Origin: Pecten maximus
Taxonomy: Eukaryota
Direction of reading: 5' to 3'
DNA: 64,000 nt
Assembly (NCBI RefSeq): GCF_902652985.1
Contig: NC_047030.1
Coordinates: 6,014,001-6,078,000, forward strand
The translations under genes and the position numbers were made by a program. Positions within the stretch are counted from its first letter, which is position 1. Each line of letters begins with the position of its first letter. Below are positions 28,923 to 60,229 of this stretch, in pieces. The notes under the pieces were generated by a model. The model saw nothing but the letters and a program-made list of their open reading frames with translations. It did no database searches and was not told the DNA's origin.

Positions 28923-31900
28923 ATGGCTAATCTAAATGCAAACGACATCAGTGAGCTGAAATCTCTGTCAGCTCCTCCGCAGATTGTGAAAGATACACTA
29001 GCTGCTGCAATGATACTGTTAAGGGAGCCTAATCCACGGGTAAGTATACCTATATAAGTACATATTACTCATATATATAAGTATATTCACTACATATATA
29101 ATATAGCACACAATGAGAAATACATTATCAGATCCATGTCTGTACGTCACGCTTATATTTAAATCTCCTGGATGGAAAATGGTTTATCTAAAAAAATAGT
29201 TCACCAGTTTTACGGCGAATACATGTGTTAATGGTTAATACTTTCATCAGTTTCATGGCGATTAAATCTGTTAATGTCTAAGGTTTTCTCCAGTTTCACG
29301 GCCATTACGGCGACTACACGGTGTTTATGTCTCAAACTTTTACCAGTTTCACGAAGATTACATGTGTTGGTGTCTAAAGCTTTCTCCAGTTTCTCGACGA
29401 TGACATGTGTTAATTTGTAAATATTTCACCAGTTTCACGACGATTACATGTGTTTATGCCTACAGTTTTCTCCAGCATTACGACTTTAAATATGTCTATG
29501 TAATTGTAATGTTTTGTAATATAATTTGTTTTATTTACAGTATCTATTGCTTAATTGTATTTATGTCGTTATCCTGTACACTTGATAATTGTTCCTTACT
29601 CGTGCAGGATTTACCTGTAGTCATCTGTGCGTGTCGTATTGTATTGTAGACTGAATTAGATTCACTGACGAAGCACGTGCAATGTAACCATGTGTAGCAT
29701 ACCTGTGGAGTTATACGGGAGTACGACCTTATTGGTCAGGTTACACTCGGGTATATAAGGTCGGGGTACCAGTAATACGGGTCCCTCTCTCTTCTGCTGG
29801 GGTTGAACTGGACAGACGTTCCAAATGGTGAAGATTGGTATAATGACAGAGCATCTTGTAACTCAGTGAGGGGAATGCTACCATCGCTAGAAGTCTGGGA
29901 TCGCCGCTAACAGCAGAACGTGGGTTTGGCGCGGACGCTGGGAAATTGTGGGCGTAAGGGGTGACGCGGACGCCGCGATTTGGCGGAAGGTTGCCAGGGC
30001 GCCGGTGACGGTACTGCGGGACGGGCGAGGGCAGACAGACGACAACGGCGATGTTGGTACCTCCTCACTGAGTTGCGTATTACATTTTATAGCAATATCA
30101 ATTGGCACTGTTATTAACGCCGGCGTAACGCCCGCGAACGCCAATATTACGCCAGTTAGTGCAGGACGCATTTTCGACCAAATATATTTATATTCCCAAG
30201 AGCCGTACTCCCAATATTATTGTAGTGTGTGTCATTGAAATGTCCAAAGAAGTAAATAAATTTATGTGCGTAGACAACTGTTTTTGTTAGATATATAATT
30301 AATTAAGACGCAACTACTAGAAACGCCAACTTGGCAGGGAGACGCCTCGAGGAGCGGCAAAAGACCTCAAAATATCTAACCGGAAACGGAAGGCAATCCT
30401 TTACATAATGAAAAACGGATGAAATTCAACATTACTTCTATATATGAAATGGAAAGTTTATCTGTTCGAAGTTGGTATGTTTTTACACCGAAATACTGAT
30501 CCCGTTTCCAGAGTTGTTTAAATACCTATACAAATAGATATGCAATAGGTGTATTTGATGCAAAGTGTATTCTATTTAAAGTTTATAATATAACACAATA
30601 TGAGCATATCATCGCTTTAGCTTTTGAAAATTAATAGAAATAATACTTATTGGGCCAATATGATTATATTAAGGCATGCAAAATTCCAAATAAATATAGA
30701 AAAGGGATTTAAGAAAGGGCCTGTTTCCAGTAATGTTAATTCTCTATAGGAGCCTGCCCCCGTATAATTTCTTATCTAGCTCAACTACAGTTTTTTTCTT
30801 TTCCGAAGAATAATTTTACACCTTTCCGACACCCAGATTTCATAATGTCAGTGAAAATGTATTTTTATAAAGTTGTCATTTTGAGCATCAAAGACATAAG
30901 GTCGTAAATAAAAGAAGGTTATCTCGAAATTGTAATTCGCAACATAGTATAAATTTCTTTTGATAGATATTTCCAAAACATCGTGTTTATTCATAAAACA
31001 TAAAACAAAAATTTTCTCGGATGAAAATGCACTTGCAGAGACACAATTATGAAGAAAAATGCCATAAAATTGCAATTTTCTCCCGTTATATAGTTTTGGA
31101 TGCAAATTTCCATCACACAATCGGATAGAGCTTTACTTGTTTCATATGTGTACCAAAAATCAGCTAATTCCATGTGGTTGAACGTTCTCATATCGCCGCC
31201 TGAATGTGGTTGTAAATTGAAAGAAAAGGGGAAATGAGTAACAACCTTGTCTGAAACCCTATTATATAGCTTATTATATACAAAATTTTATATTGAATAT
31301 CAGAGCGGATATTTTCATGACAGTTTTATGATATCTAACGACTAAATAAACAGTATCGATATAAAGATTTACACTGAGGACACCCTGATACATGAAAACT
31401 GTTCTATCTCAAGTTGTCCTCTTTTGAATTTTCTGATCGTGTGGCCTTGTACATTTATCCGTATCTTCTTGTCTTTGTCTATACGTTTACGGAATCATTG
31501 AATCGACGCTTGCTATTCTTGTCTCACTTTCCTTGTTTAATTTCCCATCTCCAAAGCGTTGTGGCTCTGTCAGGGTTGGGACCCTGACTTGTCTCACTTT
31601 CTTTGTGCCTGCCGACCACGCCACATCGAATAGATAGATTATCCATATGAAATACTTTATTTTGTTCTAAGTAATCAATCAATTCTGCGCTTCTTGGAAG
31701 TATTGAATGTGATTTATTATATTGTCTTGTTATTTTGTGTAATTAGTTGTTCGTTATTTATCACACATTTTCGCATAATTGTACCAAACTACTAAGTACT
31801 ACTAAGTATTGTCACGGGGACTTGTGAAGTAGCCATCTTGAATTTTTTTTTTACGAAAAAGTGTTTCTCCAACTTTTTTTCATATCTGTGTACATATTCT

Positions 31901-33248
31901 CAACATACCGAGCAAATACTCTCGTGTTTTTGTTAATTATCTAAAGAAAGTCGAAAATCGGCAATTCAACCATAGGCTAATTCAACCCAAGATTTGAAAA
32001 TGTTCCACCACTTACATGTTGATGATGTTTCCTCTCATCAATAGCATATTACGTACTGTTTAATAGGATAAAAATTGGTTTGCATCCAACGCCCATAAAA
32101 GGGTGTATTCTCTAAAAAAACACAGTTTTTGTGTCTAAAATGTTATCATCGAAAATGGAATTTTTGAGATTGTTTCTTCCATAAAACAGCCAAATGGCGC
32201 GATGGAAACATGATTTTTGTCACAATCATGCCATGAATGTATTCTTTACGGTGACCATCACTTGATTAGATTTTCATTAATATTTTACATAACATGCACA
32301 TTTTATCAACACTTAGACAGCTTCTGAAAGGTACAACTTTGAGGAGCCATAAAAAACAAACCAAGTGACCTAAATCTTTATACTTTATAGATTTGTGACC
32401 ACAACGGCATGGGCAATGCACCACCAACAGGAAATTTGAATCAGAGAAGGGGCCATTTTGGAAACAGGCCCTTTGTAGAAATTGTATCGTCTGTCTTTAA
32501 ACTGTTAATAGAGGACTCTCCTAGAGATCTGGAAATACTGTATATGTTTTGAACACATATATGTCTTATTCTATTTTAGAACTTGTTCATCTGTTCAAAG
32601 AACACTCTCCCCGAAGTCTGGAAATTCTTCAGACATTCAGACTTACTCTGCTTTTGATTGCATCCACATTTTATCTTATTTTATTTACTGAATGAGCCTT
32701 TTTGCCGATCTGGAAAATTTTGCCTTTGATCACATCCACTGGTTTTTTTCGTTTTTCATGTAAAAAGTAAATAGTTTGATCACGTTTACCTTAATTTTTT
32801 GTTGTAGGATTTTAAGACAGCTAAAAAAGCATTGGCCAATATTAACTCACTGAAACAAAAACTGTCGGCTGTAAATGTTGATGCTATCTCTAAAGAAGAG
32901 GCTGAGGAAGCACGATGTCTTCTTGGGGACATAACAGTAGGAAAAGTTCGTAGTGTCAGCTCAGCCACGTGCGGCATCTTTAACTGGGTATGTATACTTC
33001 AAGTGAACTACACTTGTACCTGGATAAGAGAATGCCTGGATATAAGTAACAGTTATTGTGCACGGGACATCGTTATTGTTACGTTGTTAATAAGTATAAT
33101 CCGGGCGTTAAACAATGGGGAAAACATCTATCTCTATCGGATTTTCATATTGTTTATTGTTTATATGTTCCAGGTACAGGAAGTGCTATCCAGTGTAGAG
33201 AAGAGGACAGGGAGCCTAAGTACAGCGAAGGACGACATAAAAACCTGA
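28923..33248 (+). CDS. Stand-alone dynein-MTBD-like small protein, paralog 1 (123 aa, 3 exons)
   Basis: Exons 28923-29039, 32808-32987, 33174-33248; GT-AG, phase 0. Protein MANLNANDISELKSLSAPPQIVKDTLAAAMILLREPNPR|DFKTAKKALANINSLKQKLSAVNVDAISKEEAEEARCLLGDITVGKVRSVSSATCGIFNW|VQEVLSSVEKRTGSLSTAKDDIKT*. Confidence 0.85.
29200..29490. repeat. Diverged ~42-bp tandem repeat in intron 1 of paralog 1
   Basis: Recurrent ccagtttcacg(a/g)cgattacatgtgtt... Confidence 0.75.
30717..32471. mobile_element. Non-autonomous DNA transposon-like insertion with short TIRs in intron 1 of paralog 1
   Basis: GGGCCTGTTTCCA at 30717 and its reverse complement TGGAAACAGGCCC ending at 32471. No clean TSD and no transposase. 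Confidence 0.5.
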
Positions 33249-34326
33249 TGTACACCGATAACTGTCCAGTATTTAACTAGATGATCACTACCCGATATCG
33301 AACAACAAATACAATGGCTCATCTATTTGCTCAACCGATTCATCTTGTTGCCATAAGCGCTGTTGCTATAAATCCATGAACTTTTCATGTTTACACATTT
33401 TTTTTTTTTTTTTTTTAATTATCGTTTTGATTATACGTTGTATTAAATGTCCTCTTTATAAATCGCATCGGTGTCATTATTCTTTAAAGAGAACGGGAAA
33501 TTATCTTGTCACGACCTACTTTCACTTTCACTTTCACTATCACTTCCACGTGGTCAGTGTTGCGCCATTTAACTATTTGTTGATTTAATTCAGTTACAAA
33601 TACATTTTAAAACCAATGGTCAAATCTGCGTCAGTTTCAACTGCCGTTATTTATCCATTATGGAATTCTAGTGAGGTTAATGTGGTTTATACAACCTGGC
33701 AGAATATGAAATATTGACCCGGCTTGCTTCTAGAAGGTCGGTAAAACACCATACTGACCGAAACAAAGGTCCATAATCATTATATTAGATATTTGTATCT
33801 GTTAACAGAAAGTTCACATAAATATACCTAAGAAGAAACTTATCTTTTTTTTATTTGATCTTGCTTTTTTCGCATATACGGCACAATTTTGGTAATGTAC
33901 CTTACAAATCGACTTGATCTTAATTGATATCTTTTACTATGTAATATGCTAATTTAAGTCCGCTATTTAGAATAATGGTTTGGTTTTCACGTTGAAATAA
34001 TCTTATTTTGCCGATTATGTACATTTGTAGTTCATATTTCAAGATATAAAATGGCGGAATCGCATTTTTCCATTAATTTCGATGGAACTAGTTATCTCCT
34101 AATAATTTCATCATTTCATATTTAACGCAAGTCGTTTATGTGTAAAAAGTTATTGACGAAATCAGTTTAGCTTGTTTAGATTGGTCATCGCTTCACACGT
34201 TTCCGTTGCAGTGAAAATATTCTCATTGTTTTGGACGTATCTACAATTCCTTCATTTGAACATTTTTTTTATGTTTATTTGTCCCATTCACATCACAGTC
34301 GTTTATGTGAAAAAAGGCATTGATCA

Positions 34327-34523
34327 AGCGGGCTGCAGTTAGCAGCGGATTCGTTATTCGTTATTGGGGATTCGAATAATGAATCCGCTGCCAGATTCGT
34401 TATTTGAATCCAAACGTCAATAAAATGAAATATCATTTAAACAAAAAAAAACTGAATCGCAGCGGATTTGTTATTCGAATCCCCGATAACGAATAACGAA
34501 TCCGCTACTAACTTCAGCCCGCT
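34327..34523. mobile_element. 197-bp MITE with ~65-bp TIRs and 9-bp TSD (Mutator-like signature)
   Basis: TIR agcgggctg(c/a)agttag(c/t)agcggattcgttattcgttat(t/c)ggggattcgaataa...; direct repeat CATTGATCA at 34318-34326 and 34524-34532. Confidence 0.85.
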
Positions 34524-35384
34524 CATTGATCATTGGTCTTTAGGAAAACGTTACCAAGACAACAACAATTATATATAATGGTGTCCAGGCCTGAATATGT
34601 ATGATGAAGTAATATATACTGTTTTTCTAAGTAATAAATATCAATATAAAAAACAGCTAAATCGTATTCCTATGGCCAATCAAGGAAGCCGTGAGTTCCA
34701 AAGTAAAATTATGAAAATAAACAAAATGGTCAGAACAAAGTTTCGATAACAAAGAGGAAGTATTATAAAGATTGAACAAAAGTCACACAGGAGATGAGCA
34801 CATTAGCATATTTAACTTTTTCGTCCCTTAAGGACTCGTCAGTGTTTCCATGCGTCTAAAGTATAGATCATGTATGAGAAGGCTACTATAACTAGAAATA
34901 CGAACCAAGAATACCAATGGCTGGGGAGATGCAAAACCAGTTTTGATGTTGAATTTAATATCAAGAATATTAAGTGCATATTCGTAATTGTTTTATTATT
35001 AAAAACAAAGAAACGCATACCACAATTTGTTTTGTAAATTAGGACAGTGCTTATTTTTAAACAAAATAAAAAAAAAACCGATATGAATCGGCTCGAGAAC
35101 TATTCCCATGCTATCTATCTGTAATTTAGCATTACAGCACAACCCCACGACGGGAAATGATAACGCGCTTCTCCCCAAACTTAAAGACTTTTACGAAACA
35201 CACAAGTGGATATTTCCTTTAAAGTTTAATATTTGTTCCACTTAAACCGTATCATTTTAACGATCCTCAAAGCATCATACTACATTCCCAATGGTTTAAA
35301 TAATTTAGTATCTTATCAGTTAATATCGTTTGGTCCGCAGTTTTGTCAATCTATTTAACGCTCAATTGTTTCATCATTTAACAT

Positions 35385-35622
35385 ATTTGACAGTTCCTTC
35401 AAATTCGGACATATAACATCTTTGACAGTTCCTTCCATTTCGAACGTAGAACATCTTTGACAGTTCCTTCCAGTTCGGACGAAAAACGTCTTTGAGAGTT
35501 TTTTCCAATTCGGACGTAAAACACCTTTGACAGTTCCTTCCAGTTCGGACGTATAATGTCTTTGAGAGTTCCTGTCAATTCGGACGTACAAAATATGTGA
35601 CAATTCCTTCCAATTCGGACGA
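35385..35622. repeat. 35-bp tandem repeat just downstream of the paralog 2 stop codon
   Basis: Unit tttgacagttccttccaattcggacgtataacatc-like, ~7 copies. Confidence 0.85.
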
Positions 35623-35749
35623 ACAGGCGTGCTATCCCTTGAAATTTGGACAACTGTGAAAGAATGAAAAGGGCGCAGGTTTCTTTGGCCTTTTTCAATA
35701 TTGCATAGATAGTCTTTCTGTAAAATACTTGATAGTATAAGTATTAAGA

Positions 35750-37350
35750 TCAGTTGGTTAGGTCTACCTTGTCTGTACTTAGGCTTCCTTTCCTCTCCTC
35801 TACCCGGGATAGCACAGTCTGTACCTGAAACAAATAAACAATAATTAGAATGAATGAGGAAAATGACATGGAATAGATTCATGTCATAAGGTGTTGTCTG
35901 GTTGATTATATCTTTTTCAATAATTTATATGTTTGTCTGTCATGTCACTTTATCGAGTGTTTGATCATTTAACGCCAGAATGTAACGTATATCCCACATA
36001 TATATACATACCCAACAAAAGATGCCGCTAGCAGCTGCACAGACACTTCGAATTCTTTCTTTTGTTATTCCGTTAACAAGTCCTCGTGCTTTCACAGCGT
36101 CCTCCATAGCGATAGTGTCGACATCTAGTGACGACAGTCTATGATTCAGTGACTTGTCAGATTTGTTAGATAGTGCTCTTAGAGCAGTTTTGTAATCCTA
36201 CAACAAAATTAGAAGTGAATGAGACCAGTACTCCATGATTATATCAAAATTTCTTGGCGACTTAATTAAAACCATGTAGGAATCCGTGTGGGCATTTAAA
36301 CATTTTAGGGGAAGTAATCAAGTACTTTAGGGGTTTAATTTGTCATGTGTAAGTAGGATTGATTAATAAAAATGTACATACGAACTAGTCATGACTTTCA
36401 TTGATCTATAGTCAAATGGAACATTTTATCCCCTAGAATATCGATCAATGGCTGAAATTAAGTGAATGGCGGATAATGTTTCCTTATTCACCATTTCATT
36501 CAATCAATGACGGACACAGACATAAATCCTATAACTTCTGGATAAATTATCAATTAAACTATTCTATTGCTTAAAAATTAAAAACAATACTTTGAACCTT
36601 CCATCACAACTTAAAAAGGGTTATAATTGAATGTGATATAATCCAATATACAATGTATATATAGTAATTAATTTGTTACTTTGCCAGCGGTAGTATAAAC
36701 GCGACGGTTTACAGGTACTAAATGCTGCGCGTGTTCGCTTCATAGAACATGTGTGTATCACATCAATTATACTTCATATCACCGTAAGCGGATGAAAACA
36801 TAAATAAATCTCTCAATTAGTATTGGGAAATGGCATGGAATTGAAGCAAACTTCAACATGTCTCGTGGTCTTGAAAGTAGAATATGTAAGCGTTCCTTAA
36901 TCTCATTAAAACCAGAATGTTTTAGGCATAAATGTGCCTTGCATTAAAGAAAGTAGAGAAAGATTTACATTAAGATAGTGGAGAATTTTTTTTTTTTTTT
37001 TTTTTTTTTGAAGCGTAGCCACTGGAGCTTTGATTTGAATTGCGATTTACATATAAACAACTTTGGAAAGTAGCTTCTACAACAGAAATATCTCTGCAGG
37101 AAATTAAGAGTATTCATTCATATAATTTATATCATGGTACATTGAAAATGTGTGCGGATACCATATGTGGTGTTACAAATGTACATGTGTATTCACAAAT
37201 AATCAAATAATCTACTTATGTATATATACTAACCCGTGGATTAGGCTCCCCTATTAGTATCATTACAGCTGCTAGTGTATCTTTGACCAACTGTGGAGGA
37301 GCAGCCAGACATTTCAGCACACGTATGTCCTGTGGTGAAACTTCAGCCAT
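35750..37350 (-). CDS. Stand-alone dynein-MTBD-like small protein, paralog 2 (125 aa, 3 exons)
   Basis: Minus-strand exons 37350-37234, 36197-36012, 35824-35750. Protein MAEVSPQDIRVLKCLAAPPQLVKDTLAAVMILIGEPNPR|DYKTALRALSNKSDKSLNHRLSSLDVDTIAMEDAVKARGLVNGITKERIRSVCAAASGIFCW|VQTVLSRVEERKGSLSTDKVDLTN*. Confidence 0.85.
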
Positions 37351-39546
37351 GTTGAGAGTGTTTTTGTTTACCTACGTATACTTTGTTGTGACCTATTCAC
37401 CAAGCTGAGTCCTATAAAGTAATAGACGTGTTTTCCATCTAGAATTAAAACTTTTAATATATAACGGGTCTGTTAAAAGGGAATTCCAATGTGAGTGTAG
37501 CTATGTTACTTATAAACAATCAAATCGATCCCCTAGTGGGCATTTACGTCTACAAAGACCTGCTATATTGGACTACGATAACATATCCATTACGGACAAG
37601 TCCAACCCATTATAGGGGGTAATGGGTGATTCTTTAGTTTAATCTTCTTAGAATTTCTGAATAACAAAAATCAATTTAATTATATCAAGGTAATAATTAG
37701 TAGAAATAATGATCCACAACAGCATTAGTGTTATTTTTTATTGATATGTCAGCATATGAAGGCAATGTATAACTTGATATTAAATTCAGTATTTTCTTTA
37801 TTATGTATATTCTGTAGAATGAATCATACCCAATGCATTTAAAGAATAATATTTTAAAGGTGAGTACACAATAACCATGTCGGCATACCTCAAGACACAA
37901 TGGAGTCGCCCAATACCGATGATCCTAATGCAAGTGAACACACCGGGTCATTACTATATATAGACACAGATACAAAGGTATGTTTATATTTCATAGGTAT
38001 CAGTTGATTACTTTAACGGATATCCTGTTGTTGCGTCGTGGATATATTCGTGAACATCTTTCTTGGTATTCCTTCTGATGAGCCACGGAAATTCCATTAT
38101 AAGAAAGTAATTGTTAGTACGCCGATTCTCTTGATTTTGGCGAATGCACAAATTATCGGAAGATCTCCCCAGGAGTCCCTACGACTAGTATGGTTATCAA
38201 AACTTGCTCTTTATCAGTGTTATCAATTTTAAATAAAACTGGGTCAAAGTTCGATCGTGCCCGAAAACGGCCGAACCAGCAAAAACTCGCAGTAGAAAAA
38301 GTCTTTTTATTTTTTTTTTTTTTTTTTTTTCATGTTTTTTTTTTTTTTTTTTGTTATTTTTTGTACCGACATGAGTCTGTCTAAACAGTCTGTTACATGT
38401 TAAACGCACGTCGTCCCTACACTGGACTTATTTTGTTGAGACATGACCGTGATAAAATCAGTACCCGGATTTTGAATATCAAGGCCGATGCTTACTAATC
38501 ATCATAAGCTAATTTCATTTGTATTGTTTCAGTATGCCCTATTTGGTCCAAAGATTTAAGGGAAATCTACTTGGCCAAGGGTTATGATTTCCTCCACTCA
38601 TTCCAAGATAAGACAGATTTCATTATTCATTAAATCAAAGATATAGTCAGACGTTCCTCACTGAGCCATTTTTTACTTTTATGACGTCATATTTGTTGAG
38701 ATGTTAAAAACCCAAATATAAATCCTATTATCAGTATATACATTTAACGATTTCTCCCTATTGGAAAGAAGTTTTCTATCTAATAAAAAAAATCTGGGAC
38801 CTTTGATTCGGTTATTATAGTGTTATACCAACCTGGTACAATCTTATCAGCTTCTCACCATGATTGGTTAATATCGTTTAGAGTGTTAATGCTTGTGGAA
38901 TACAGATATCGGACGATATCATCTACACATTATTGTCAACAATATTATATGATTTTGTCCTTAAATATTTCAAAAACGACGTTTATGTTTTAGATAATCA
39001 CGGAATAACATCCTTTTTTAAATTGTCATCACGTACAAAATTATATACCATATCACCACTTTTCTAACATTGACCTGTGACATGTTACCCGACTCGTCCT
39101 GTTAATCTTACATGGACAGATATGTCCTATCCGTGATCAGCGTTGCAAAAATACAATAACAAGGTGATATATACCGGTGAGTATTAATTTAACATTTCAA
39201 ATACCTTTATATAATGTCTTGTAAATGAACATGATATCGAGACCATTGTGTAGTGAAGTTCGCAAGCAGTGATCACTTTTTGTTCAATTCTTACACTATT
39301 CAAAAGGATATATTACAAATCTACCTAAACTTCGACGTCCCTGTAATGAATATGGTATCGTGGTCCAATATAGCAGGTCTTTGTAAAGGTAATGCCCACA
39401 AGGGGATCATTTTTAGATTGTTTTTAAGTAACAGAGCTACACACATTGGAATTCCGTACCGGTTATATTAACGTTTTGATCACAGCCCTAACTATACGTC
39501 TGGTACTGTAGAGGAACGTGTTTCAAATATACAGAACACTCTAAAC

Positions 39547-42500
39547 ATGGCTAAAGTAACACAACAGGAACTTGGTGAGCTGAAATCTCTAGCTGCTCCT
39601 CCGCAGATCATTAAAGATGTACTGGCAGCTGTAATGATATTGATAGGGGAACCTAATCCAAGGGTAAGTATATATATATACTTTTAATATACTAGTAGTA
39701 TATCAATCAATCGTATGTACATATAAAACAAAGTAAAATATATATACGTGAGCACTTGCAATATACCATACGATAAATAGCCTGAATGAAATTTCAACGA
39801 GGATTTCTTTATATCAAAGCTACTTTCTAAAGTTGTATATAAATATATGTAAGTCACACTAACAAGTAAAGCTACAACGATTGTTAAACACGTCAGTATC
39901 AAATATTTTCAAGACATTTACAGCACTTTCTTGACTGTTATATACCATAGCGTTCATACCTCCATAATATACCATAGCGTTCATACCTCCATAATCACAC
40001 TAAAAGTGAATTACTGCATATACCATAGCGTTCATACCTCTATAAACAAACTAAAAGTTAATTACTTTATTTACATCGAATATAATTAAGGTCTATTAGA
40101 GTATATGAACCTATGGGAAATTCAACTTATTTCTATTTTCCTTAACTTCATTGTTTAAACTGTTAATTACATACTACCGAGAGTAAGGTATATTACCGCC
40201 ATACTTTGAATAAAGTTGAATGAAATTAAGAATATGTATTCACAGCTTCCTCTGAATGATATATTATAATCATTAGTTACAATAGCATTGACTTATGGCC
40301 ATAGTTTAACGTCTATCAGTTATATCTGTTAAATAAATTCGACTTAAATTGACAGATAACCATATCCCTGTCATACTTGCGTTTTGTGCCTTGACCTTTA
40401 AAGTAGCTTTGATGCATATACAAATGTATGTGTTTTCAACAGCGCTGCAAGAGAACTCGCCAAAAGGTCTTGAAATAGTAAATATCGTTTGATATCAGTC
40501 CCTTCTAATTCTGTTGTAGGAGTATAAAACAGCTCAAAAAGTATTATCGCAGAGATCATATGACAACTCTATGATAGAAAGACTTTCGACACTAGATGTC
40601 GGCACTATCCCTATGGAGGAAGTTGTGAAAGCACAAGGACTTGTTGACGGAATAACAATAGAAAATGTTCAAAAAGTTAGTTTGGCTGCCTGCGGTATCT
40701 TTTCCTGGGTATGTATATATACATGTTTCATTTCTATATAATTGTTTGCCCAGTGTTTGTACTGTTTGGGTTTTTTTTTCATACCCTAAGGAAAATGAAA
40801 AAATGCTTAAATATATACAACTGTATATATACTGAAACGAAAAAGAAACGCAACTTCAAATTGTAGGTTTAATAAAATAATACTTGTGAGCATTATGTTT
40901 AAATTTCATATGTAATAGTTAATATTGAATATTGATGTAACATCCTTTAAATGTTTAGAGATTTTTAAGAACAGGTCACTTTGCTAGAAGGTCATGATTG
41001 GTAGTACCCTACGTGAATCCAAGTTGAAATGGCAGCAGTTTTGAAACCGTGCCCTAATATCGTGTGTGTCCTCCTCGAACAGTTATCACATCTCTAATTC
41101 TTTGTTGCATTGAGTTCATCAGGGCATTGACTTTCCGTATTGGAATGTTATTCCATTCTTGGACGAGTGCATTTGCTAACTGAGGGAGGGTATTTGGGGG
41201 GTTACGGCGATTTCGAATTCTTCTGTCTAATTCATCCCACAAATGCTCGATTGGGGACAGGTCGGGGCTATATGGAGGCCAATCTATAGGAACAATGTTC
41301 TGTGTCGCAAGAAAGTCTCTACAGACTCTTGCAACGTGTGGTCTCGCGTTATCTTGCTGAAAGGTTAGATGATGCTGCCTAACAAACGGCACAACATGGG
41401 GCCTAAGGATCTCATCCCGATAGCGTACGGCCGTTAAATTCCCATTGACTATCACCAAAGGCGTCTTCAAACCATGGGAGATTCCCGCCCAAACCATAAC
41501 TGATCCACCCCCAAATCGGTCGTGTTCCAAAACACAGGCGTCAGCAAAACGTTCGCCTCGACGCCGGTACACACGTTGACGGCCATCTGCTCGAAATAAC
41601 GTGAATCGAGATTCATCGGTGAAGAGCATAGACCTCCAACGTCTCATAGGAAAACGTCTGGGCATATGTGCCGTTGCCCATTGCATACGACGTGCTCGAC
41701 GTTGCGGTGTTAGTGGTAAACCAACGTACTGTCGCCTTGCACGCAAATTAGCCTCACGCAGTCTGTTGATCACTGTTTGGGGATGAATTCGACGGTTATG
41801 ATTACCAATCGTATTCCTTGTCGTTTCAGCGGCCGTTAATCTCCTGTTACGCAGGTGTGCCAACCTAAGAACCCGGTCTTGACGTCGCGACGTTACGCGT
41901 GGACGTCCTGATCTCGGCTGGTCATCGACTCTTCCTGTTGCGTTAAGACGTGAAACTAATCGACTAATAGTCGATTTGTGAACTCTGAATTGTCGAGCGA
42001 CGTGAAGTTGCGTGTTCCCTGCCAGAAGCATCGCTATAGCACGTCCTCTATCAACCTTTGATAACCGTGGCATAATTGTAAAAGGAATTATTGTTTGCAA
42101 AAGTATTGGCGATGATGTGGCTCAATGTTAGTGATGAATTGATACTGGTTTGAATGAAAAAAGAACGCATATGTTTGTACAGGCACGGTTTTTGATGTTT
42201 TTACCGCGCCGGAAGTGCATAGGTCTCTAGTCACACTTGGGTGATTTTGAAGATTGGTATGGGTGTTAGGCAGGGTGCATGTTTATTTCCGCGATTTTTA
42301 TACAGATATGTATATTTAATACAAAATTAATCACAATTTTCCATGTTGCGTTTCTTTTTCGTTTCAGTATATATTGAAATATCAGGAGATTTATAGAAAA
42401 TAAACAACAAGGCATAAGTATTGGACGCACTTATTTGTTCATCTGTAAATTAATTAAATTCGAAGGCAAACTCATCAACACCACAATAGCGTGACATTAT

Positions 42501-43161
42501 AAATAGATTAATATGACATACATTAGTGAACAAACAAATAGGAAAAGTGCGTTACTATGAAGACAATTGAAAACCTATATGGGTTATAAGACTTGTGTGT
42601 CGGCCTCATTGATAACACTCGCGAATCAATTCTTTGGTCAAATGCAGGTTAGTCTACGTTCTAAAAATAAGAACTTGCTTGTAATAATGACATCACCTTA
42701 CTATTAAAAAATTTGCAATCATGCTGTACTTTACATCTCGTAGATAATTAATCAAATATAAAGACGACCATTGACTTCCTGCAATTTTAATGTTTAACGG
42801 TTGTCTTCAACAGATTGTGGAGTCAAACTATTTGGCGGTAATCCTTTTAAGTCAACCGCGCGAAATTTGATAAATGTTCAACATTCATGCTTTTGATAAT
42901 AGTAGATATAATACCGATAAAAATGTCCGGGGTAAGTCTTGACCTATGTAATTGTTACTATGACACATATAAATTAAATTCCTGTTATGACGTCATTTCC
43001 GGTATTGATGAGTTGTATGGGGGAAGGAAAACCCGGCTCTGTTAGAATGATTACCCCAATTCGTCGATTATTTAATTCAGATTATTATTATAATTATGTT
43101 TCAGTTACAAGATGTACTATCCCGTGTGGGGGAGAGGACAGGAAACCTGAATAAAACCTAG
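39547..43161 (+). CDS. Stand-alone dynein-MTBD-like small protein, paralog 3 (120 aa, 3 exons; Tc1 in intron 2)
   Basis: Exons 39547-39663, 40520-40708, 43105-43161. Protein MAKVTQQELGELKSLAAPPQIIKDVLAAVMILIGEPNPR|EYKTAQKVLSQRSYDNSMIERLSTLDVGTIPMEEVVKAQGLVDGITIENVQKVSLAACGIFSW|LQDVLSRVGERTGNLNKT*. Confidence 0.83.
40830..42369 (-). mobile_element. Intact Tc1-family DNA transposon
   Basis: Perfect 25-bp TIRs TACTGAAACGAAAAAGAAACGCAAC (40830-40854 and 42345-42369) flanked by TA, enclosing an intact transposase ORF. Confidence 0.95.
41054..42073 (-). CDS. Tc1-like DD34E transposase (339 aa from ATG at 42073)
   Basis: Paired-like HTH (QLHVARQFRVHKSTISRL), GRPR linker, FTDESRF, VMVWAGI, FQQDNARPH, WPPYSPDLSPIEHLW. 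The spacing from the second D to the E counts as 34. Confidence 0.96.
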   Translation of the reverse strand: MPRLSKVDRGRAIAMLLAGNTQLHVARQFRVHKSTISRLVSRLNATGRVDDQPRSGRPRVTSRRQDRVLRLAHLRNRRLTAAETTRNTIGNHNRRIHPQTVINRLREANLRARRQYVGLPLTPQRRARRMQWATAHMPRRFPMRRWRSMLFTDESRFTLFRADGRQRVYRRRGERFADACVLEHDRFGGGSVMVWAGISHGLKTPLVIVNGNLTAVRYRDEILRPHVVPFVRQHHLTFQQDNARPHVARVCRDFLATQNIVPIDWPPYSPDLSPIEHLWDELDRRIRNRRNPPNTLPQLANALVQEWNNIPIRKVNALMNSMQQRIRDVITVRGGHTRY

Positions 43162-46373: not shown

Positions 46374-48432
46374 ATGTTATCATTGTTCAAGTTTAAATTA
46401 AGCCGACGACACATATTATGATTGACTGATTTGATGTTTATAGACGTCCAATTATTGGTTGTTACTGTTTCCTCTCTGCAATTGCATCTTATGTCGTATA
46501 TGTTCGAATCCATGTTAACCTCCATGACCGGAATTATTGTTGTAGCCATAATAATTTATCTATATAAAGTATCATGCCAAAGATGGTCAACTGGTTAATA
46601 TCGACTTTCCGAGAAGCCTGGTGGTATCAATTATTTATCAAGCTCAATTGCAGGATTTACAAGTTATCGTACATAGGCTACTTGTAGTCGAATCCAAAAC
46701 ATACCCTCGTACTTTCCAAGTGTGTTATATCCTATACAATTACAGGCAACACGTGTTATATATTTACACTTAGTTTATAAAATAGGTAATTGTTTTATTC
46801 CAATCTGTGCATGTGAAATAAAATCTAGATCTAAATATAGGCCTTGTAAATTTGCGATATCACGTGGAGTTAAATCGAAAATATCGGCTAAGACAGCGTA
46901 CTAGGTTTAGTATATTTCATTTCAAACAAAAGCTTTAAATACTAAGTAACTTTTAAAATCCAAACATGTTTTAAAATTATGCACACAAATAGGTCTCTGC
47001 CATTGTGAAGGCTGATTGTATGACTTCACCGTCGCTTGTGGCTTCAATCAATGACAAATGAACAAAAGAAAACACTGGTCAGTAGCTATAGACTTGTAAT
47101 TAGTCACGGCACGGTGAACTTACCACTCATCGCGTTTGCTTAAAATCGACCATGCATACCTAATACTATTTGAATCAATATAGGCTTAAGTAAATCTGAA
47201 CACAGGTAAACGTTGTAAATTTCACACCTGATTACATTTCACACCTCAGCGAGATATGCGAAGAAAAGAAAATTGGGGAACTCGATAAATCCCCAGTGTT
47301 CCGAGTGCAATTGCATCGAGAATTCCGAACAGAATTTTCCGATTGTGAACGAGGAAAATACATTTCTTAAAAGTAATTCAGGGCGAAATTAAAACGGGGC
47401 GAATATCTTTTGTGTTGCTCAAGGGCGAAAATAACCTGGGGCGAAAAATACCAGGTATACAGTAGTCAATCAAAGGTGTATACCCTTGTTAACATACCCC
47501 CGTATTAAACATATATCTATAAGAAATAACGATACATCTTGAGGAAATGGTGAAATCTCAATTAGAATCAAAGTATTTTGAGTATATCATTTATTCGTAA
47601 GCATAGGTATTGATATTTTGTGTCTTCTTTTTTCTTTGAGATCAATTTGTAGTATTGACTACTGTAAATAACAATCAACAATAATAAAGGACAGAAACGC
47701 TACCTCATATGATACATCCGACAACAAATAAGTGACCGTATTCTATGATTTAATGAAAAATGTCCGTCGGTGTCTCATGTGTATTAACGGTAGCATTTCT
47801 ACAGTTTAATGATTATATTTTTAAACTTCAGATACTCTTAAGATAGCAGGTGAGGCTTTACACTACATGTTTATCGTACACAAAATCAATTCCATGTTGC
47901 TAAGCAGGTATACGGAGCTTCCATTCAAGATGCACTAAAACATTTTCCAGAGTTCGACCATTTCAACCCTTACATACGTTTCCCATTATTTGCGGGTACA
48001 CGCAATATTACCATCTTACAATGAATAACAGAGTAGGGGCTTCGTTGTCTGGAATTTCCGTGGTATAGCTGAAGGTAGTTTCGAGACAAATTTCCTAGGC
48101 ATTTCCAATGACGTAGCCTATATTAGATGTTATATTATCATAAGGTACACATACATCACATTTACCGAATTGATATAACGTTTTGTGGGGCCTGTTTAAG
48201 GTCAGGTAATAGGTCGGCTTAAGTGTTATGTTTTTAAATATCCAGGCAACTACGACACAGTGGATAGTCTAATCGGTCGGTCTATTTCTTAATACTTTGG
48301 GCTTCCCATATAGTGAGTGTGTATATAGAGATCATATACACATACATGGATGTCTACGTGTTACGCTAGTGTATGTGAACAAGTCAGGTAACATTTGAAA
48401 TTTGTCAACTATACAAACCAAAAGTATTGAGC

Positions 48433-51400
48433 ATGGTAAGCAAAGGCGATGTTACTGAGCTGAAGTCTCTCAGTAATCCTCCGCAACACGTCAAACAGGT
48501 CCTTACAGCTACAGTGACACTGCTTGGGGAGGAAAACGCAGAGGTATGAAAACCAAGTAGTACATATTGATTCAGTAGAATCTGAATTATTCTGCATGTT
48601 ATCGGCACTGACCGGAACCGTACTTAACACTACAACTCGTGTTAGCATTAACCTAACTAACTATTTTTCTCTGTCTTTTGAGTTGTAAATTTATTTTAAT
48701 TGTTGCAAACAACAAGAGATAATTATTTTGAAACAATTTTAGATATAATACGTTTTCCAATCATAGAAATTTTAAATTATATTAAGCTAACAATGCAGAT
48801 TATATTACCTAGGGCAGATCACCTGTGTCGCTGATAAGCCAGGTAAAATACTCATGCTGTTTATATTCAATCAGAATTGTTAGCATAATTTGAAAACAGC
48901 TGTCATAACTCTTAACTTTTGATTTCTTTATAGTACAGAAATACTCACATTATCTATCATGTGCGAAATTCAAAGTTGTAAATGTGAAAGATCGTTCTTA
49001 TATTACAAATACTGGTCTACGTATCTGTATTTGTCTGTAGATGATACCCGTCTTAACATTTATATAATATTCAATATCCATACTGATTGAATTAAATCTT
49101 GGGGTAGGTCTACCTCTCTTTCCATTACTTAACAGTGATTTACTTCATCAAATATCCTTAATATATCGAAATAGTTTACATCCTCTATTTTGTGTATCGT
49201 AATTGCAACATAAAAAAGATGTTGATCAAAATCAGAAGAAATGTAGCAATGCCTTGATGTTCACCATTAAAATAACGATGATTTCGTTTCTAATATATTT
49301 GTAGGATTACAGATATGTTAAAAGAGCATTGGGTGACTCCACATTTTTGCAAAGTTTAGCAAAAATAGATGTCGGTTCTATTCCTCCTGAGGTGGCTGCG
49401 AAGGCACGTGGTTACATTGATGGTATCTCAGAGGATCAAATCCGCAATGTTAGTAAGGCGGCATGTTCCCTCTTCCGTTGGGTAAGTTGGTAAACATCTG
49501 ATCTATCAAACCCATGTTTATTTGAAGGAGAAGAATGCTGCAATGAACAAACAAGCATTGCTTTGGTTCGTTAACATTCCATGTAACATTGCTACACCAA
49601 CATAGTACTTCTTTGTTACTCGGCCTCATTTATGCTTAATGTACCTGGTTTATAAAGACCTATATTAAAACTTGTGATAACAAACTTTACTCAACGTGTA
49701 CGTAATTCTGGGTTGAATATTTCTATAATTATTATTGATTATACAGTTCTATGAGCGAGGACATCAATGTACTCCAAGACTTTTATCCTCATTTTTTGAC
49801 AGTTGTAGGAATTGGAAGATAGTTGTCATTTGTAGGAATGGGTAGAGAATAGTCAGTTGTAGGAATGGGTAGGTATTGGTCAGTTGTAGGAACGGGTACA
49901 TATTAGTCAGTTGAAGGAACGGGTACATATTGGTCAGTTGTAGGAATGAGTAGATATTGGTCAGTCGTAGGAATGGGTAGATATTAGTCAGTTGTAGGAA
50001 CGGGTACATATTGGTCAGTTGTAGGAATGGGTACATATTGGTCAGTTGTAGGAATGGGTAGGTATTGGTCAGTTGTAGGAATGGGTAGATATTGGTCAGT
50101 CGTAGGAATGGGTAGGTATTGGTCAGTCGTAGGAATGGGTAGATATTAGTCAGTTGTAGGAATGGGTAGATATTGGTCAGTTGTAGGAATGGGTAGATAT
50201 TGGTCAGTTGTAGGAATGGGTAGGTATTGGTCAGTTGTAGGAATGGGTAGATATTGGTCAGTTTTAGGAATGGGTAGATATTGGTCAGTTGTAGGAATGG
50301 GTAGATACTGGTCAGTTGTAGGAATGGGTAGATATTGGTCAGTTGTAGGAATGGGTAGATATTAGTCAGTTGTAGGAATGGGTAGATATTGGTCAGTTGT
50401 AGGAATGGGTAGATATTGGTCAGTTGTAGGAATGGGTAGGTATTGGTCAGTTGTAGGAACGGGTACATATTGGTCAGTCGTAGGAATGGGTAGATATTGG
50501 TCAGTCGTAGGAATGGGTAGATATTAGTCGATTGTAGGAATGGGTAGATATTGGTCAGTTGTAGGAATGGGTAGGTATTGGTCAGTTGTAGGAACGGGTA
50601 CATATTGGTCAGTCGTAGGAATGGGTAGATATTGGTCAGTCGTAGGAATGGGTAGATATTGGTCAGTTGTAGGAACGGGTAGATATTGGTCAGTTGTAGG
50701 AATGGGTAGATATTGGTCAGTCGTAGGAACGGGTACATATTGGTCAGTTGTAGGAATGGGTACATATTGGTCAGTCGTAGGAACGGGTACATATTGGTCA
50801 GTTGTAGGAATGGGTAGATATTGGTCAGTTGTAGGAACGGGTAGATATTGGTCAGTTGTAGGAATGGGAAGGTAGTTGTCAGTTGTAGGAATGGGTAGAT
50901 ATTGGTCAGTTGTAGGAATGGGAAGGTAGTTGTCAGTTGTAGGAATGGGTAGATATTGTTCAGTCGTAGGAATCGATAGATATTAATCAACTATAAAAAT
51001 CGGTTAATATTAGTCAGCTATAGAAATCGGTAGATATTAGTCAGCTATAGAAATCGGTAGATATTAGCCAGCTATAGAAATCGGTAGATGTTAGTCAGCT
51101 ATAGAAATCGGTAGATATTAGTCAGCTATAAAAATGAGTAGATATTAGTTAGCTATAGAAAGGGGCATACATTAGTCAGCTATTAAAAGGGGTAGATATT
51201 AGTTAAATAATGGGATATATATATATCAATCAGCTATATAATATGATACATATTAGTCAGCTATTAAAAGAGGTAGGTAAATTATTCAGCTATATAACGG
51301 GATATATATTAATCAGCTATATAATAGGATATATATATTTGCCGGCTATTAAAAGGGGTAGAAATTAGTCAGCTATAAAAATCGGTAGATATTAGTCAGC

Positions 51401-51625
51401 TATAGATATGGGAAGATATTAGTCAGCTATAGATATGGGAAGATATTAGTCAGCTATAGATATGGGCATATATTAGCTATAAGGCGTATCTTTTTACATT
51501 TTCATTTCCTTGTTTCACATTATCATAATGTACATCATTTTTACGTGTTTCAGATACATGAAATATTAGCTGCAGTCGAAAAGAGAACAAGCGATCCGAG
51601 CGCGACAGCAAAGCCACAAGCCTGA
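48433..51625 (+). CDS. Stand-alone dynein-MTBD-like small protein, paralog 4 (119 aa, 3 exons)
   Basis: Exons 48433-48543, 49305-49481, 51554-51625; AATAAA at 51826. Protein MVSKGDVTELKSLSNPPQHVKQVLTATVTLLGEENAE|DYRYVKRALGDSTFLQSLAKIDVGSIPPEVAAKARGYIDGISEDQIRNVSKAACSLFRW|IHEILAAVEKRTSDPSATAKPQA*. Confidence 0.85.
49798..51480. repeat. 27-bp minisatellite (~44 homogeneous copies to ~50990, then a diverged variant) in intron 2 of paralog 4
   Basis: Unit ttggtcagttgtaggaatgggtagata, grading into ttagtcagctatagaaatcggtagata. Confidence 0.95.
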
Positions 51626-55748: not shown

Positions 55749-55805
55749 GACGAAAAGAGAACATGATTTTTGAGTGCGACAGCAAAGCCGGAATCCCAGA
55801 GCTGA
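55749..55805 (+). pseudogene. Orphan degenerate exon-3 relic of the MTBD-like family (closest to paralog 4)
   Basis: GAC GAA AAG AGA ACA TGA TTT TTG AGT GCG ACA GCA AAG CCG ... TGA aligns with paralog 4 GTC GAA AAG AGA ACA AGC GAT CCG AGC GCG ACA GCA AAG CCA. It has an internal stop, and no exon 1 or 2 was found nearby. Confidence 0.6.
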
Positions 55806-57195: not shown

Positions 57196-57976
57196 GATAA
57201 CAAAATTGAGACTTTCAGCACACAATCTAGCTATAGAATCAGGAAGGTATAGGAATATTCCCAGGTGTCATAGGTATTGCATTAACTGTAATTCTTTAAA
57301 AGTTGAGGATGAATTTCATTTTTTACTCGTATGTCAAAAATATTCAACTCTTAGAGGAAAATATATAAAGAAATATTTTTGGAAAAAACCTTCAGTCTTC
57401 AAAGTAATAGAATTACTGAACACAAATAGTCATAAAGAATTGAATTTGCTAGGAAGATTTATCAAAGAAGCTTTTAGTTGCAGAATTGTGTAAATATACT
57501 CGGTTTGTGTAGGTGTTGAGTTTTGATGTAACACGTTATTGCATAATAGTGTACTTATAATTGTTGAACCTCCCGGTGTCCGTCTGTCGTGTTTACCAAA
57601 TGGTATTATCTGATACATTTTTCCATGTCTCTCTGACTGACTGTTATAAAAGTTCTCCTATAATCCTTATTCTGTATCAGTGTATTATAATTAGTATCAA
57701 TTCTGTGATTGGGCGCAGCCCTTGTAAGATTAAGTGGAATACAATGTATTTTTTGCTGATGTTGCCAGTAGACAATATGGTTGATTAATATTCCTCATAA
57801 TATAGTACATATGTCGGTTAATCAGTTTCTGTATTTAATTATAATAAGTCAATTACGTTTTGTAATTTTATTATAATACATGTTGTATTCATATATATAT
57901 ATATACATATATAAATACATGTATATTAATTTATGTACTGATGGGTCATAGACCTAAAGTCAATAAATGAATTGAA
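57196..57976 (+). mobile_element. 5'-truncated non-LTR retrotransposon (LINE): ORF2 C-terminus plus 3' UTR
   Basis: ITKLRLSAHNLAIESGRY...CINC...VEDEFHFLLVC..Y..LR.KYI is a typical ORF2 C-terminal Cys/His motif, with stop at 57493. The 3' end has a hairpin ggtc-ata-gacc, AATAAA and a (gaatt)n tail. Candidate TSD ttgatcat at 57188-57195 and 57977-57984. Confidence 0.85.
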
Positions 57977-58635
57977 TTGATCATTTCAATACCTTTTCAG
58001 CTAATAAGCGTCATGTGACTTAACATAATAACAAATAAATGTCTTCGTAATTCACTCTTCGGTTTAGATAACTCTTTTTTTTTCCTTGGAAATAATATTT
58101 TAAACAGTTAAAAAAAACACTTTAAGATGACACCAGAGTTTACAAAGAAAAGATAATTTGATATACCTGATGTTGGGTGTACGACAATAACCGGGTGTTT
58201 AGTTAAAACCATGAGTAGTCAATACACCTATCACTGGTCAAACTCGGTCAATCAATACCGTCATATTATAGTGCTGAGTGAAATGGGCCTGGCCTCACTG
58301 GAATTCCCCATGGTATGACTGTAGGTAATTTCAGACATGGGGAGGTCCCCTGATGGATATCCTCTGACGTAGTAAGAGTCTATATGAGTTAATATTGTTC
58401 TATAGTTGTATATATGTATCTCGTATTAATCAAACTGGTGACGTTTTTGGCACAGGTAAACCCCAAGTATAGACTGGCTTAAAGTCCAGGTAACACCAAC
58501 ACAATGGTTTTATACGTTATATGTATTATAACTTTGGACTTACCCGTACCCTGTATATAAAGTGACCGTGTACACGGGCGGTCAGTATGGTGTATGGAAG
58601 GTGTATAAACAAGTCAGATTTAAATTATATTGAAC

Positions 58636-60229
58636 ATGTATGGGATCAAGAAAGGGGACGTTGCTGAAGTAAAGGCTCTTTGCTCCCCTCCACGTTCCGT
58701 CGTACAAGTCCTTTCAGCTACAATGACACTGCTTGGAGAGGTGAACCCAGGGGTAAGTCTGAATACTGATCCTGTGAAGTAGGGACAATGCGGAATGTCT
58801 TGAACGTTGCGGACACTTTCAAGAAACGTCTAAGATATATTGTTTTCCTGTAGCGCCTTTGATATCCAATATTGAACGTCCTGTAATGTAACGCGTTTCT
58901 GGAAACTCTCCATCAAGATTTTGACATTTCTTTTTTCTTTGGACTAATTTAGTTTCCTCTGATTCCTCAGTTATCCACATTTTAGGTCCCTATCGTCATG
59001 ACAAGGACGAATCAGTTGTTTGATTCAGTTTAATTTAAGTTTGGCTCTATCTTATAATTCTCAATTTATATACAAAGGTGATATTTCCTATGTGTAATCC
59101 TGTTATTACGTAGCTTGAGTAATCATCGTTTTCCTGCTTTTTGAAAAAAATGAAAATACATAACAATGCCGTCGCGTTTCTCTTCAGTATAAAATCCCAA
59201 ACCGATGGCGATGAAGTGTTTTCAATGCTAAACTTTTCCAACATCTGCCTCATATAAGTTTCAATAACATCGCAACCTACAAAACGGATAACTGAATATT
59301 GATATGACGATTCATACAGATAGACTATTTATTATATTATTTTATTTTATTTTTTTTAATTTTAACTCTAATATTATTCTAGAAATGAAATTTATCGTAA
59401 AAAAACGCATTTTCCGTCATTGTTAAATCATCCACCGCCTAGGTGAAAGGCCAATGGGTTACCACTGTGCCACCCGACCATCCTTCATCAACTTGATAGG
59501 GAAAACTGGATTTTTTTTCCTGTTGTGTCTTTCATACTGACAAATGAATTTAACTTTAGGATTTCAGGAATATCAAAAGAGTACTGGCTCATTCGACATT
59601 TTTACAAAGAGTGACAACACTAGATACTGACTCTATTTCCCCTGAGGTGGCTGTGAAGGCGCGTGGGTATGTCGAGGGTATCACAGAGGAGCAAATCACC
59701 AAAGTCTGTTTAGCTTCAACCTCCTTCTTCCGTTGGGTATGTATATTTATTAATCAATGAACAATTTATTTCGGGGAAATCTTTTGATATGATTTAGCTT
59801 TTTTTCCCCAAAGTCTCTTTTATTTAACCATTTATGTCATATGTTTTAACTAAAACATAATTGACATCAATGCTAAAAATAATTTTTTGAAATTGATTTT
59901 TAAAATCAAAACATGTTCTATGTGCAATTTGAATGATCTAATAAGGGATTCTTTTCACAAATCAATACGCAAAGTTTATCGCTGTATTGTCACGTCACAT
60001 TTTTCTGGCAATTTTCGATTTTTTTTATTTTTCTTTCATAGAGGTATGAAAACAAATTTCAACATATTAGAAAGCCGCATTCTGCGTACGAACAATAGAA
60101 AATTAATTATATGAATTTGACACAATCACTATACCTGTGTATTTGCTACAGGTACGTGATGTATTAGCCGCTGTCGCGAAGAGAACAGGAGATCTTCCCG
60201 AAGCGGCAAAGAAGGAACCTGCAAGTTGA
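58636..60229 (+). CDS. Stand-alone dynein-MTBD-like small protein, paralog 5 (123 aa, 3 exons)
   Basis: Exons 58636-58752, 59560-59736, 60152-60229. Protein MYGIKKGDVAEVKALCSPPRSVVQVLSATMTLLGEVNPG|DFRNIKRVLAHSTFLQRVTTLDTDSISPEVAVKARGYVEGITEEQITKVCLASTSFFRW|VRDVLAAVAKRTGDLPEAAKKEPAS*. Confidence 0.85.

Follow-up and report, generated by a model that had tools for sequence, protein, structure and literature searches.

Motor-less dynein microtubule-binding domains encoded by a tandem gene cluster in the scallop Pecten maximus

Introduction

Studies of the microtubule-binding domain (MTBD) of the dynein heavy chain have so far treated it solely as the terminal part of a motor with an affinity-switching stalk. 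Its helices H1, H3 and H6 face tubulin, the surface formed by H2, H3, H4 and H6 is pre-primed, and the stalk moves H1 to set affinity (PMC6629372, PMC4298687); roles in tubulin contact have been assigned to K3298/K3299 and R3382 of the mouse protein and to E3390 of the Dictyostelium protein (PMC4298687, PMC4987762, PMC6629372). Here we examine a cluster of five genes, p1 to p5, in a 64-kb stretch of the 918-Mb genome of the scallop Pecten maximus (G000:C16:6014001-6078000; hereafter the window, with positions counted from its first nucleotide). A preliminary description of this DNA had proposed that the five genes encode free-standing domains of the dynein MTBD type, and our analyses support the conclusion that their products are motor-less, stalk-less proteins consisting of the dynein MTBD alone.

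The distance from the closest described system is considerable. In a dynein heavy chain, which exceeds 4000 amino acids, the MTBD is accompanied by a 15-nm coiled-coil stalk, an AAA+ ring, a linker and a tail, whereas the scallop proteins have 119–125 amino acids and no ATPase, hence no affinity cycling. In the literature searched we met no account of MTBD proteins without a motor, in agreement with the preliminary description, which knew of none for an expanded free-MTBD gene family. The domain itself is well known; it is the motor-less architecture, whether free, tandem or fused, that appears to be undescribed. The sequences are already public under automatic, misleading names.

Results

Fold and homology of the five proteins

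Sequence reading combined with six-frame comparison places five intact genes between positions 28923 and 60229 of the window, each with three coding exons and a product of about 14 kDa (123, 125, 120, 119 and 123 amino acids for p1 to p5, respectively). All ten introns run from GT to AG, lie in phase 0 and occupy homologous positions, and a stop codon closes exon 3 in every paralogue; the preliminary description had likewise read five intact three-exon genes with canonical splice sites. Pairwise amino-acid identity among the products is 37–62%, with two subgroups, p1–p3 and p4–p5.

We analysed p1 and p5 through identical database proteins (P0001 and P0009) and p2–p4 exon by exon. With 34 bits (E 2.2e-8), P0001 exceeds the 24-bit cut-off of the Pfam MT profile (PF12777), and the match covers profile positions 100–207 of 344, which correspond to the globular tip but not to the stalk. 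Against the same profile, single exons of p1, p4 and p5 score 13.5–19.9 bits, below threshold, with exon 1 as the matching exon, and exon 2 alone has no Pfam match. Whole P0009 has no Pfam match at E <= 0.01 either, though in a phmmer search of the PDB, which returned dynein heavy chains only, it matches DNAH6 at 3.3e-8 (p1 matches dynein-1-beta at 8.7e-6). A profile built from 49 short members of the family retrieved only dynein chains from the PDB, 89 distinct ones with the top match at 1.8e-27.

The predicted structures agree with these searches. AlphaFold models of p1 (pLDDT 81.7, pTM 0.71) and p5 (pLDDT 87.8, pTM 0.81) begin with a short N-terminal helix, continue with six helices and end in a long one, and the top Foldseek ranks (about 30 for p1 and about 45 for p5) are dynein MTBDs throughout. 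The best match for both, bovine DNAH10, superposes with probability 1.00, a TM-score of 0.79–0.80 and a root-mean-square deviation of 1.4–1.6 Å over about 110 residues, and the same six-helix fold is shared with the dynein MTBD structures 3ERR, 6RZB, 6RZA and 9FQR chain K2 at TM-scores of 0.7–0.8. The Pro-Pro at the CC1/H1 junction and the Trp in H6, both features of dynein, are present in all five paralogues and are invariant or nearly so in the alignment of the 49 family members; tubulin-contact residues are partly kept. At the same time, p1–p5 differ from dyneins in an H4–H5 loop that is two residues shorter, in a Phe or Tyr where the 'DW' motif of dynein has its Trp, and in a much faster rate of evolution.

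What surrounds the domain is minimal. About 10 residues precede H1 and about 12–25 follow the Trp, and the models show stub helices at residues 6–14 and 91–111. The long antiparallel CC1/CC2 stalk is represented by these stubs only, and the AAA+ ring, linker and tail of dynein are not on these polypeptides. The identification of the domain made in the preliminary description is thus borne out by Pfam for p1, by sequence and profile searches of the PDB, and by AlphaFold and Foldseek for p1 and p5; its claim that the proteins have neither AAA ring nor stalk CC1 is borne out by the length of the open reading frames and, as described below, by the short messenger RNAs of p1 and p2 and by stop codons 5' of the p2 and p5 start codons.

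Gene models and transcription

RNA-derived contigs from four public runs (X1, X2, X7 and X8, from four studies) were placed on positions 32790–38789, and both p1 and p2 are transcribed and spliced exactly as had been predicted. On the forward strand, p1 consists of exon 1 (28923–29039), which carries the ATG, the CC1 stub and helix H1 and equals P0001 residues 1–39; exon 2 (32808–32987), which encodes H2–H6 up to the conserved Trp; and exon 3 (33174–33248), coding to 33245 and followed by TGA, with a 3' untranslated region (UTR) that reaches at least 33386 in the contigs. The GT..AG joint 32987/33174 is seen in all four runs, and in X2, X7 and X8 a single contig of 520–652 nt holds the 5' UTR, exons 1–3 and the 3' UTR. 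Exon 1 of p1 lies outside the mapped stretch and was hence placed on the paralogous exon 1 of p2; its loose letters match 28914–28943 exactly. Intron 2 of p1 (32988–33173, 186 nt) is open in frame, such that an intron-retaining transcript would encode 185 amino acids, and contig depth within it is low but not zero.

The second gene, p2, lies on the reverse strand. The coding part of its exon 1 (37234–37350) is preceded by a transcribed 5' UTR that extends to 37485 or is spliced at 37410, in the latter case to an optional non-coding upstream exon (37888–38010; joint in X8 only) that holds several in-frame stops. Exon 2 (36012–36197) has both flanking joints in X1, X2 and X8, and exon 3 (34975–35824) codes from 35824 to 35753, ends with TGA at 35752–35750 and continues into about 0.8 kb of 3' UTR. 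The contigs that contain both junctions in these three runs are about 1.2 kb long and run from 37392–37485 down to about 34975, giving messenger RNA sizes of 0.65 kb for p1 and 1.2 kb for p2. In-frame stops stand 5' of the p2 ATG in both the contiguous and the spliced leader, the nearest 8 codons upstream; p5 has one 5 codons upstream of its ATG, and the frame is open for 21–25 codons 5' of the p1 and p3 start codons. Complete spliced contigs together with upstream stops indicate short, independent messenger RNAs rather than fragments of a dynein heavy chain. Two peculiarities of the p2 3' UTR are that it transcribes a tandem repeat of seven 35-nt units (35379–35621, reverse strand) and that the contig of one individual is without 25 nt at 35368.

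The remaining three genes are on the forward strand. Sequence reading gives exons at 39547–39663, 40520–40708 and 43105–43161 for p3 (coding to 43158, then TAG) and at 48433–48543, 49305–49481 and 51554–51625 for p4 (coding to 51622, then TGA). The exons of p5 lie at 58636–58752, which matches P0009 (XP_033764116.1), at 59560–59736, with 100% identity to P0009 residues 40–98, and at 60152–60229 (coding to 60226, then TGA). Spliced p1 is identical (100%) to P0001, which RefSeq names 'dynein-1-beta heavy chain, flagellar inner arm I1 complex-like', and spliced p5 is identical to P0009, 'uncharacterized protein LOC117345207'. The genes reported in the preliminary description are real, but p1 and p5 are existing RefSeq models and so were not unannotated.

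Several repeats and a mobile element occupy the non-coding parts of the cluster. Intron 2 of p3 hosts an intact 348-codon open reading frame for a Tc1/mariner-type transposase (DDE_3, HTH_Tnp_Tc3_2; 41054–42100, reverse strand). A minisatellite at 49800–51476 (27 nt, about 60 copies, with strong GC skew) makes up most of intron 2 of p4, so that exon 3 lies beyond 1.6 kb of repeat, and another follows p5 on its 3' side (61104 to beyond 62000; 42 nt, more than 21 copies); both give long spurious open reading frames.

Upstream of the start codons, about 250 nt of p1, p2 and p3 can be aligned with one another, which indicates that each duplicate carried its own promoter region along. A palindrome that forms the core of a kappaB/Rel-type site, GGAATTCC, lies at 28800–28807, 123 nt 5' of the p1 ATG, and again at 37480 (p2, −130), 39448 (p3, −99) and 58300 (p5, −336). 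These are its only four occurrences in the window, against 0.78 expected, and all stand 99–336 nt upstream of a paralogue's ATG; a GGAATTTCC-like site is present at 48050 for p4. The exact GGAATTCC was not found in the Mizuhopecten locus, and with mismatches allowed the motif is no more frequent than chance. We treat this kappaB-like motif as a lead only.

Selection and turnover

To compare rates of change, we took Nei-Gojobori counts per exon, summed them, and bootstrapped the resulting ratios of non-synonymous to synonymous divergence (dN/dS), which range from 0.27 to 0.64 across comparisons. The interval is 0.26–0.66 for p4–p5 and 0.15–0.55 against the orthologue in the scallop Mizuhopecten yessoensis, and with dN/dS at 0.29–0.64 four of the six intervals lie below 1, those of p4–p5, p4–Mizuhopecten and p5–Mizuhopecten among them; p2–p3 (0.33–1.03) and p1–p2 (0.40–1.07) touch it. 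Synonymous divergence (dS) among the paralogues is 0.4–2.0, yet all five reading frames and ten splice sites are intact. Purifying selection on p1–p5 is thus real but weak. Between individuals, differences in the RNA contigs comprise 6 non-synonymous and 2 synonymous changes, and none creates a stop.

The Mizuhopecten locus (L001) contains one intact three-exon orthologue (XP_021375480.1) and three decayed fragments, which points to birth-and-death turnover as the probable history of the cluster. The fragments lie around the intact orthologue on NEDP02005506.1 (2458–2641, 4393–4443 and 16487–16564) and contain stops and frame breaks; they exemplify dead copies of the family, in contrast to the intact frames of p1–p5.

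The preliminary description had named several outcomes that would count against it (no profile or structural match to the dynein MTBD, no spliced transcripts, exons internal to a longer transcript, or dN/dS near 1), and each test came out in its favour. Spliced short messenger RNAs were seen for p1 and p2, with stops 5' of the p2 ATG, and dN/dS is not near 1 overall, though two of the six intervals touch that value.

Relatives inside and outside the genome

An exhaustive HMMER search with p1 returned 129 representatives at E <= 1e-3, with lengths of 101–1945 amino acids, none of them a 4000-residue dynein. About 50 of the 129 are single-domain proteins of 100–170 amino acids. Short homologues of this kind are found in the molluscs Mizuhopecten, Saccostrea, Nucella, Elysia, Plakobranchus and Batillaria, and also in the tunicate Clavelina and in amphioxus (Branchiostoma). 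Database names of the homologues range from 'dynein heavy chain 6' to 'kyp peptidase'. A word-index search with p1 retrieved only p1 itself, because the paralogues have too few 5-residue words in common with it.

Other relatives carry 3–9 MTBDs on a single chain or join the domain to different partners. P0130 (1568 amino acids, from an ENA contig) has nine tandem MTBD-like domains with a strict period of 173–174 amino acids, and P0002 (937 amino acids), its representative at 90% identity, starts with a Hemingway/CFAP97 domain; further fusions involve TPR/AAA_16 in Cyanophora and CLCA/VWA in amphioxus. These proteins of protists and invertebrates (P0130, P0002/P0017, P0040) share the domain of p1 and outscore dyneins against it (35–180 bits versus at most 29 bits), but unlike the scallop single domains they repeat it three to nine times at a period of about 173 amino acids or add Hemingway/CFAP97 or TPR/AAA_16 domains. 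In the ESM Atlas, clusters of MT-domain proteins of 91–160 amino acids are commonest in Mollusca, one cluster is found in Foraminifera, and a fusion to Impact_N is present in Oomycota.

Within the window, a sixth copy of a longer, 'mini-stalk' type lies at 20935–23589 on the forward strand, with exons at approximately 20935–21063, 21497–21643, 22251–22385, 22911–23096 and 23491–23589. The preliminary description had counted five genes; these five are present, but the sixth copy was missed and the family is much larger than five. The sixth copy is more divergent, has the same intron positions as p1–p5, and is collinear with P0095, a 245-residue transcript open reading frame, at 31–64% identity per exon (56–64% over the two MTBD exons). 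An acceptor site stands at its start, and coding exons precede it. Exons resembling KY (kyphoscoliosis peptidase)/hillarin lie 1.4 kb 5' of it on the same strand (16708–19465, with further exons probably upstream); their Ig-like_KY repeats score above cut-off, and Transglut_core scores 17.9 bits, below its cut-off of 23. A fusion of this KY-like gene with the sixth copy is possible, and the name 'kyphoscoliosis peptidase' on sea-slug homologues suggests that fused models exist.

A profile search of the Pecten genome gave 53 exon-level matches, and the 28 loci fetched comprise 12 canonical dyneins and at least 16 motor-less loci of the long type, with clusters at C9:7.76–7.84 Mb and C4:27.35–27.38 Mb; this search found no further gene of the short type, in which the ATG closely precedes H1, anywhere else in the genome. 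Proteins of the long type (unnamed, P0095-like, about 200–245 amino acids) have a helical N-terminal extension of about 90 amino acids, the mini-stalk, and a C-terminal tail of about 45, whereas p1–p5 lack the extension and start about 10 residues before H1. Unlike p1–p5, they are far better conserved, with 55–64% identity to amphioxus sequences and to P0095, and some of the database models are named 'kyphoscoliosis peptidase' or attached to CLCA-like proteins. The two types have in common two intron positions and, in exon alignments that cover 5 short loci, 16 of the long type and 10 canonical dyneins, an H4–H5 loop that dyneins exceed by two residues. Exon 2 of p1–p5 scores higher against the long type, which is adjacent in the genome and includes its nearest in-genome relatives, than against canonical dyneins. 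We read p1–p5 as a probable truncated local offshoot of the long type. The first intron, which separates the 'LLGE' and 'DW' motifs, is also present in some canonical dynein genes of Pecten (L011 and L012), which argues for an origin by genomic partial duplication rather than by retroposition.

A side observation concerns a cytoplasmic-dynein-1-like gene (L021) with two adjacent diverged copies of the exon that encodes the end of CC1 and H1–H3 (G000:C3:30790803-30791006 and 30791357-30791554). The pair resembles mutually exclusive alternative exons and would give that motor two microtubule-binding tips.

Tubulin contacts

The PDB alignment pairs p5 residues 3–99 with human DYNC1H1 residues 3298–3396. 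We take mouse DYNC1H1 numbering to be two lower than human, and the match of the Lys-Lys pair is consistent with this offset. By this alignment, K5/K6 of p5 correspond to mouse K3298/K3299, E11 to Dictyostelium E3390 and K87 to mouse R3382. The glutamate equivalent to E3390 is kept in four of the five paralogues, and a basic residue at Trp−11 or Trp−12, equivalent to R3382, in all five; only p5 retains both residues of the Lys-Lys pair, p4 having one Lys and p1–p3 none.

Docking of p5 (P0009) onto a tubulin dimer gave a score of 0.21 against a mark of 0.34, a result that counts neither for nor against binding. The dimer was assembled from alpha-tubulin L056 (residues 1–437) and beta-tubulin L122 (residues 1–427), environmental contigs that are 88–89% identical to scallop tubulin and hence non-human; L120, L121, L129, L134, L139, L141 and L142 were left out, together with alpha loci of animal type, L047 among them. 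A search for beta-tubulin in viral contigs gave nothing useful. Many 'bacterial' or 'archaeal' GTDB-set assemblies and metagenome-assembled genomes among L120–L153 hold short eukaryotic beta-tubulin contigs, which indicates eukaryotic contamination, and tubulin contigs that are 95–99% identical to animal tubulin may be human-derived.

Discussion

The reading toward which we lean, with somewhat better than even confidence, is that p1–p5 are real tandem-duplicate genes for cytosolic MTBD-only proteins that would bind the tubulin lattice passively, and that they form a subgroup of a wider motor-less family. Gene structure, the transcription of p1 and p2, homology, fold and selective constraint are shown by the data, and microtubule binding with its effects is inferred from them. 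Tandem duplication would have produced five genes, each encoding one six-helix MTBD with stubs of about 10 residues of both stalk strands and no AAA+ ring, the five together being a truncated, fast-evolving local branch of that family. The free domain may dock as a monomer in the intradimer groove between alpha- and beta-tubulin that dynein uses, through H1, H3 and H6; lacking a stalk that could switch its affinity, it would bind the lattice passively, serve as a tag or compete for the site of the motor, and the microtubules of cilia or flagella would be the most plausible setting. An unswitched free domain in the intradimer groove would be the most economical mechanism, and it would fit p4 and p5 better than p1–p3. 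The CFAP97 fusions and poly-MTBD strings among the relatives point in the same direction, the strings being what would be expected of a multivalent microtubule binder.

Several observations weigh against passive tubulin binding. The equivalents of K3298/K3299 are absent from p1–p3 and the H1 glutamate is absent from p2, the net charge of the five proteins is only −1 to +3, and RNA support is confined to p1 and p2, the genes in the mapped stretch. Fast evolution (dN/dS up to 0.64, with the 6:2 excess of non-synonymous polymorphism) is not what one would expect where a protein surface recognises invariant tubulin. In addition, isolated MTBDs without a stalk held in the high-affinity registry reportedly bind weakly, in work attributed to Gibbons in 2005 and McNaughton in 2010.

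The fast evolution leaves room for a rival reading, in which the MTBD fold would be real but repurposed, binding a fast-changing non-tubulin partner such as a host or pathogen protein, in an inducible, lineage-specific and possibly immune-related expansion. Elevated dN/dS, the polymorphism ratio, tandem birth-and-death turnover with pseudogenes in Mizuhopecten, the missing H1 lysines of p1–p3 with a near-neutral charge, a kappaB-like GGAATTCC found only upstream of paralogue starts, and fusion partners elsewhere as different as TPR/AAA_16, CLCA/VWA and Impact_N are all in keeping with such a role. However, several tubulin-contact positions are kept, fusions to the ciliary CFAP97 domain occur among the relatives, no partner is known, and the motif is neither exact in Mizuhopecten nor enriched once mismatches are allowed, such that we consider repurposing somewhat unlikely. 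A role may also be sought in none at all: the five could be dispensable duplicates, transcribed, young and drifting copies of the 3' module of their longer neighbour on the way to becoming pseudogenes. Weak constraint with two dN/dS intervals touching 1, the decayed copies in Mizuhopecten, the shortened exon 3 of p3 and the transposon in its intron 2 would fit drift, but we judge it improbable given that five reading frames and ten splice sites have survived dS of 0.4–2.0, that the p4–p5, p4–Mizuhopecten and p5–Mizuhopecten intervals exclude 1, that intact short orthologues exist in Mizuhopecten, Saccostrea, gastropods and a tunicate, and that the duplicated unit includes its own promoter region.

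The exons could, finally, be internal to a longer transcript, either of a dynein heavy chain or as alternative 3' ends of the KY-like gene. The sixth copy does start at an acceptor site with coding exons upstream, p2 can take an extra upstream exon, and the p1 and p3 frames are open for 21–25 codons 5' of the ATG. Against this, p2 runs in the opposite orientation, the contigs of p1 and of p2 each represent an entire short messenger RNA with UTRs, in-frame stops precede the ATG in both the extra exon and exon 1 of p2, every exon 3 has a stop followed by UTR, and RefSeq gives p1 and p5 as 123-residue proteins. For p1 and p2 the short messenger RNAs and the stops before the p2 ATG largely refute the idea, and for the cluster as a whole we regard it as very improbable.

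Beyond the proposal of passive lattice binding, one could imagine a much broader picture, which we offer as a long shot: motor-less MTBDs would be old, widespread and overlooked readers of the tubulin lattice, used singly, in strings of up to nine, or as targeting modules for enzymes and scaffolds (for example, KY-like transglutaminase-fold proteins, CFAP97, TPR-NTPases and CLCA), and expanded in molluscs; the scallop cluster would be inducible through its kappaB-like element, would occupy the dynein/kinesin site, and would tune ciliary motors or block parasite or virus transport.

The scallop cluster suggests a natural use of the MTBD alone, alongside its use in tandem strings and in fusions to unrelated proteins. 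Proteins of 115–150 amino acids bear automatic names, among them 'dynein heavy chain 6', 'dynein-1-beta heavy chain-like' and 'kyphoscoliosis peptidase', that mislead and hide the family. If the proposed binding is true, these proteins would serve as small natural probes of the groove in which motors bind tubulin, or would block it, would provide a test of how an MTBD behaves without switching, and would be new candidate ciliary or cytoskeletal regulators in invertebrates.

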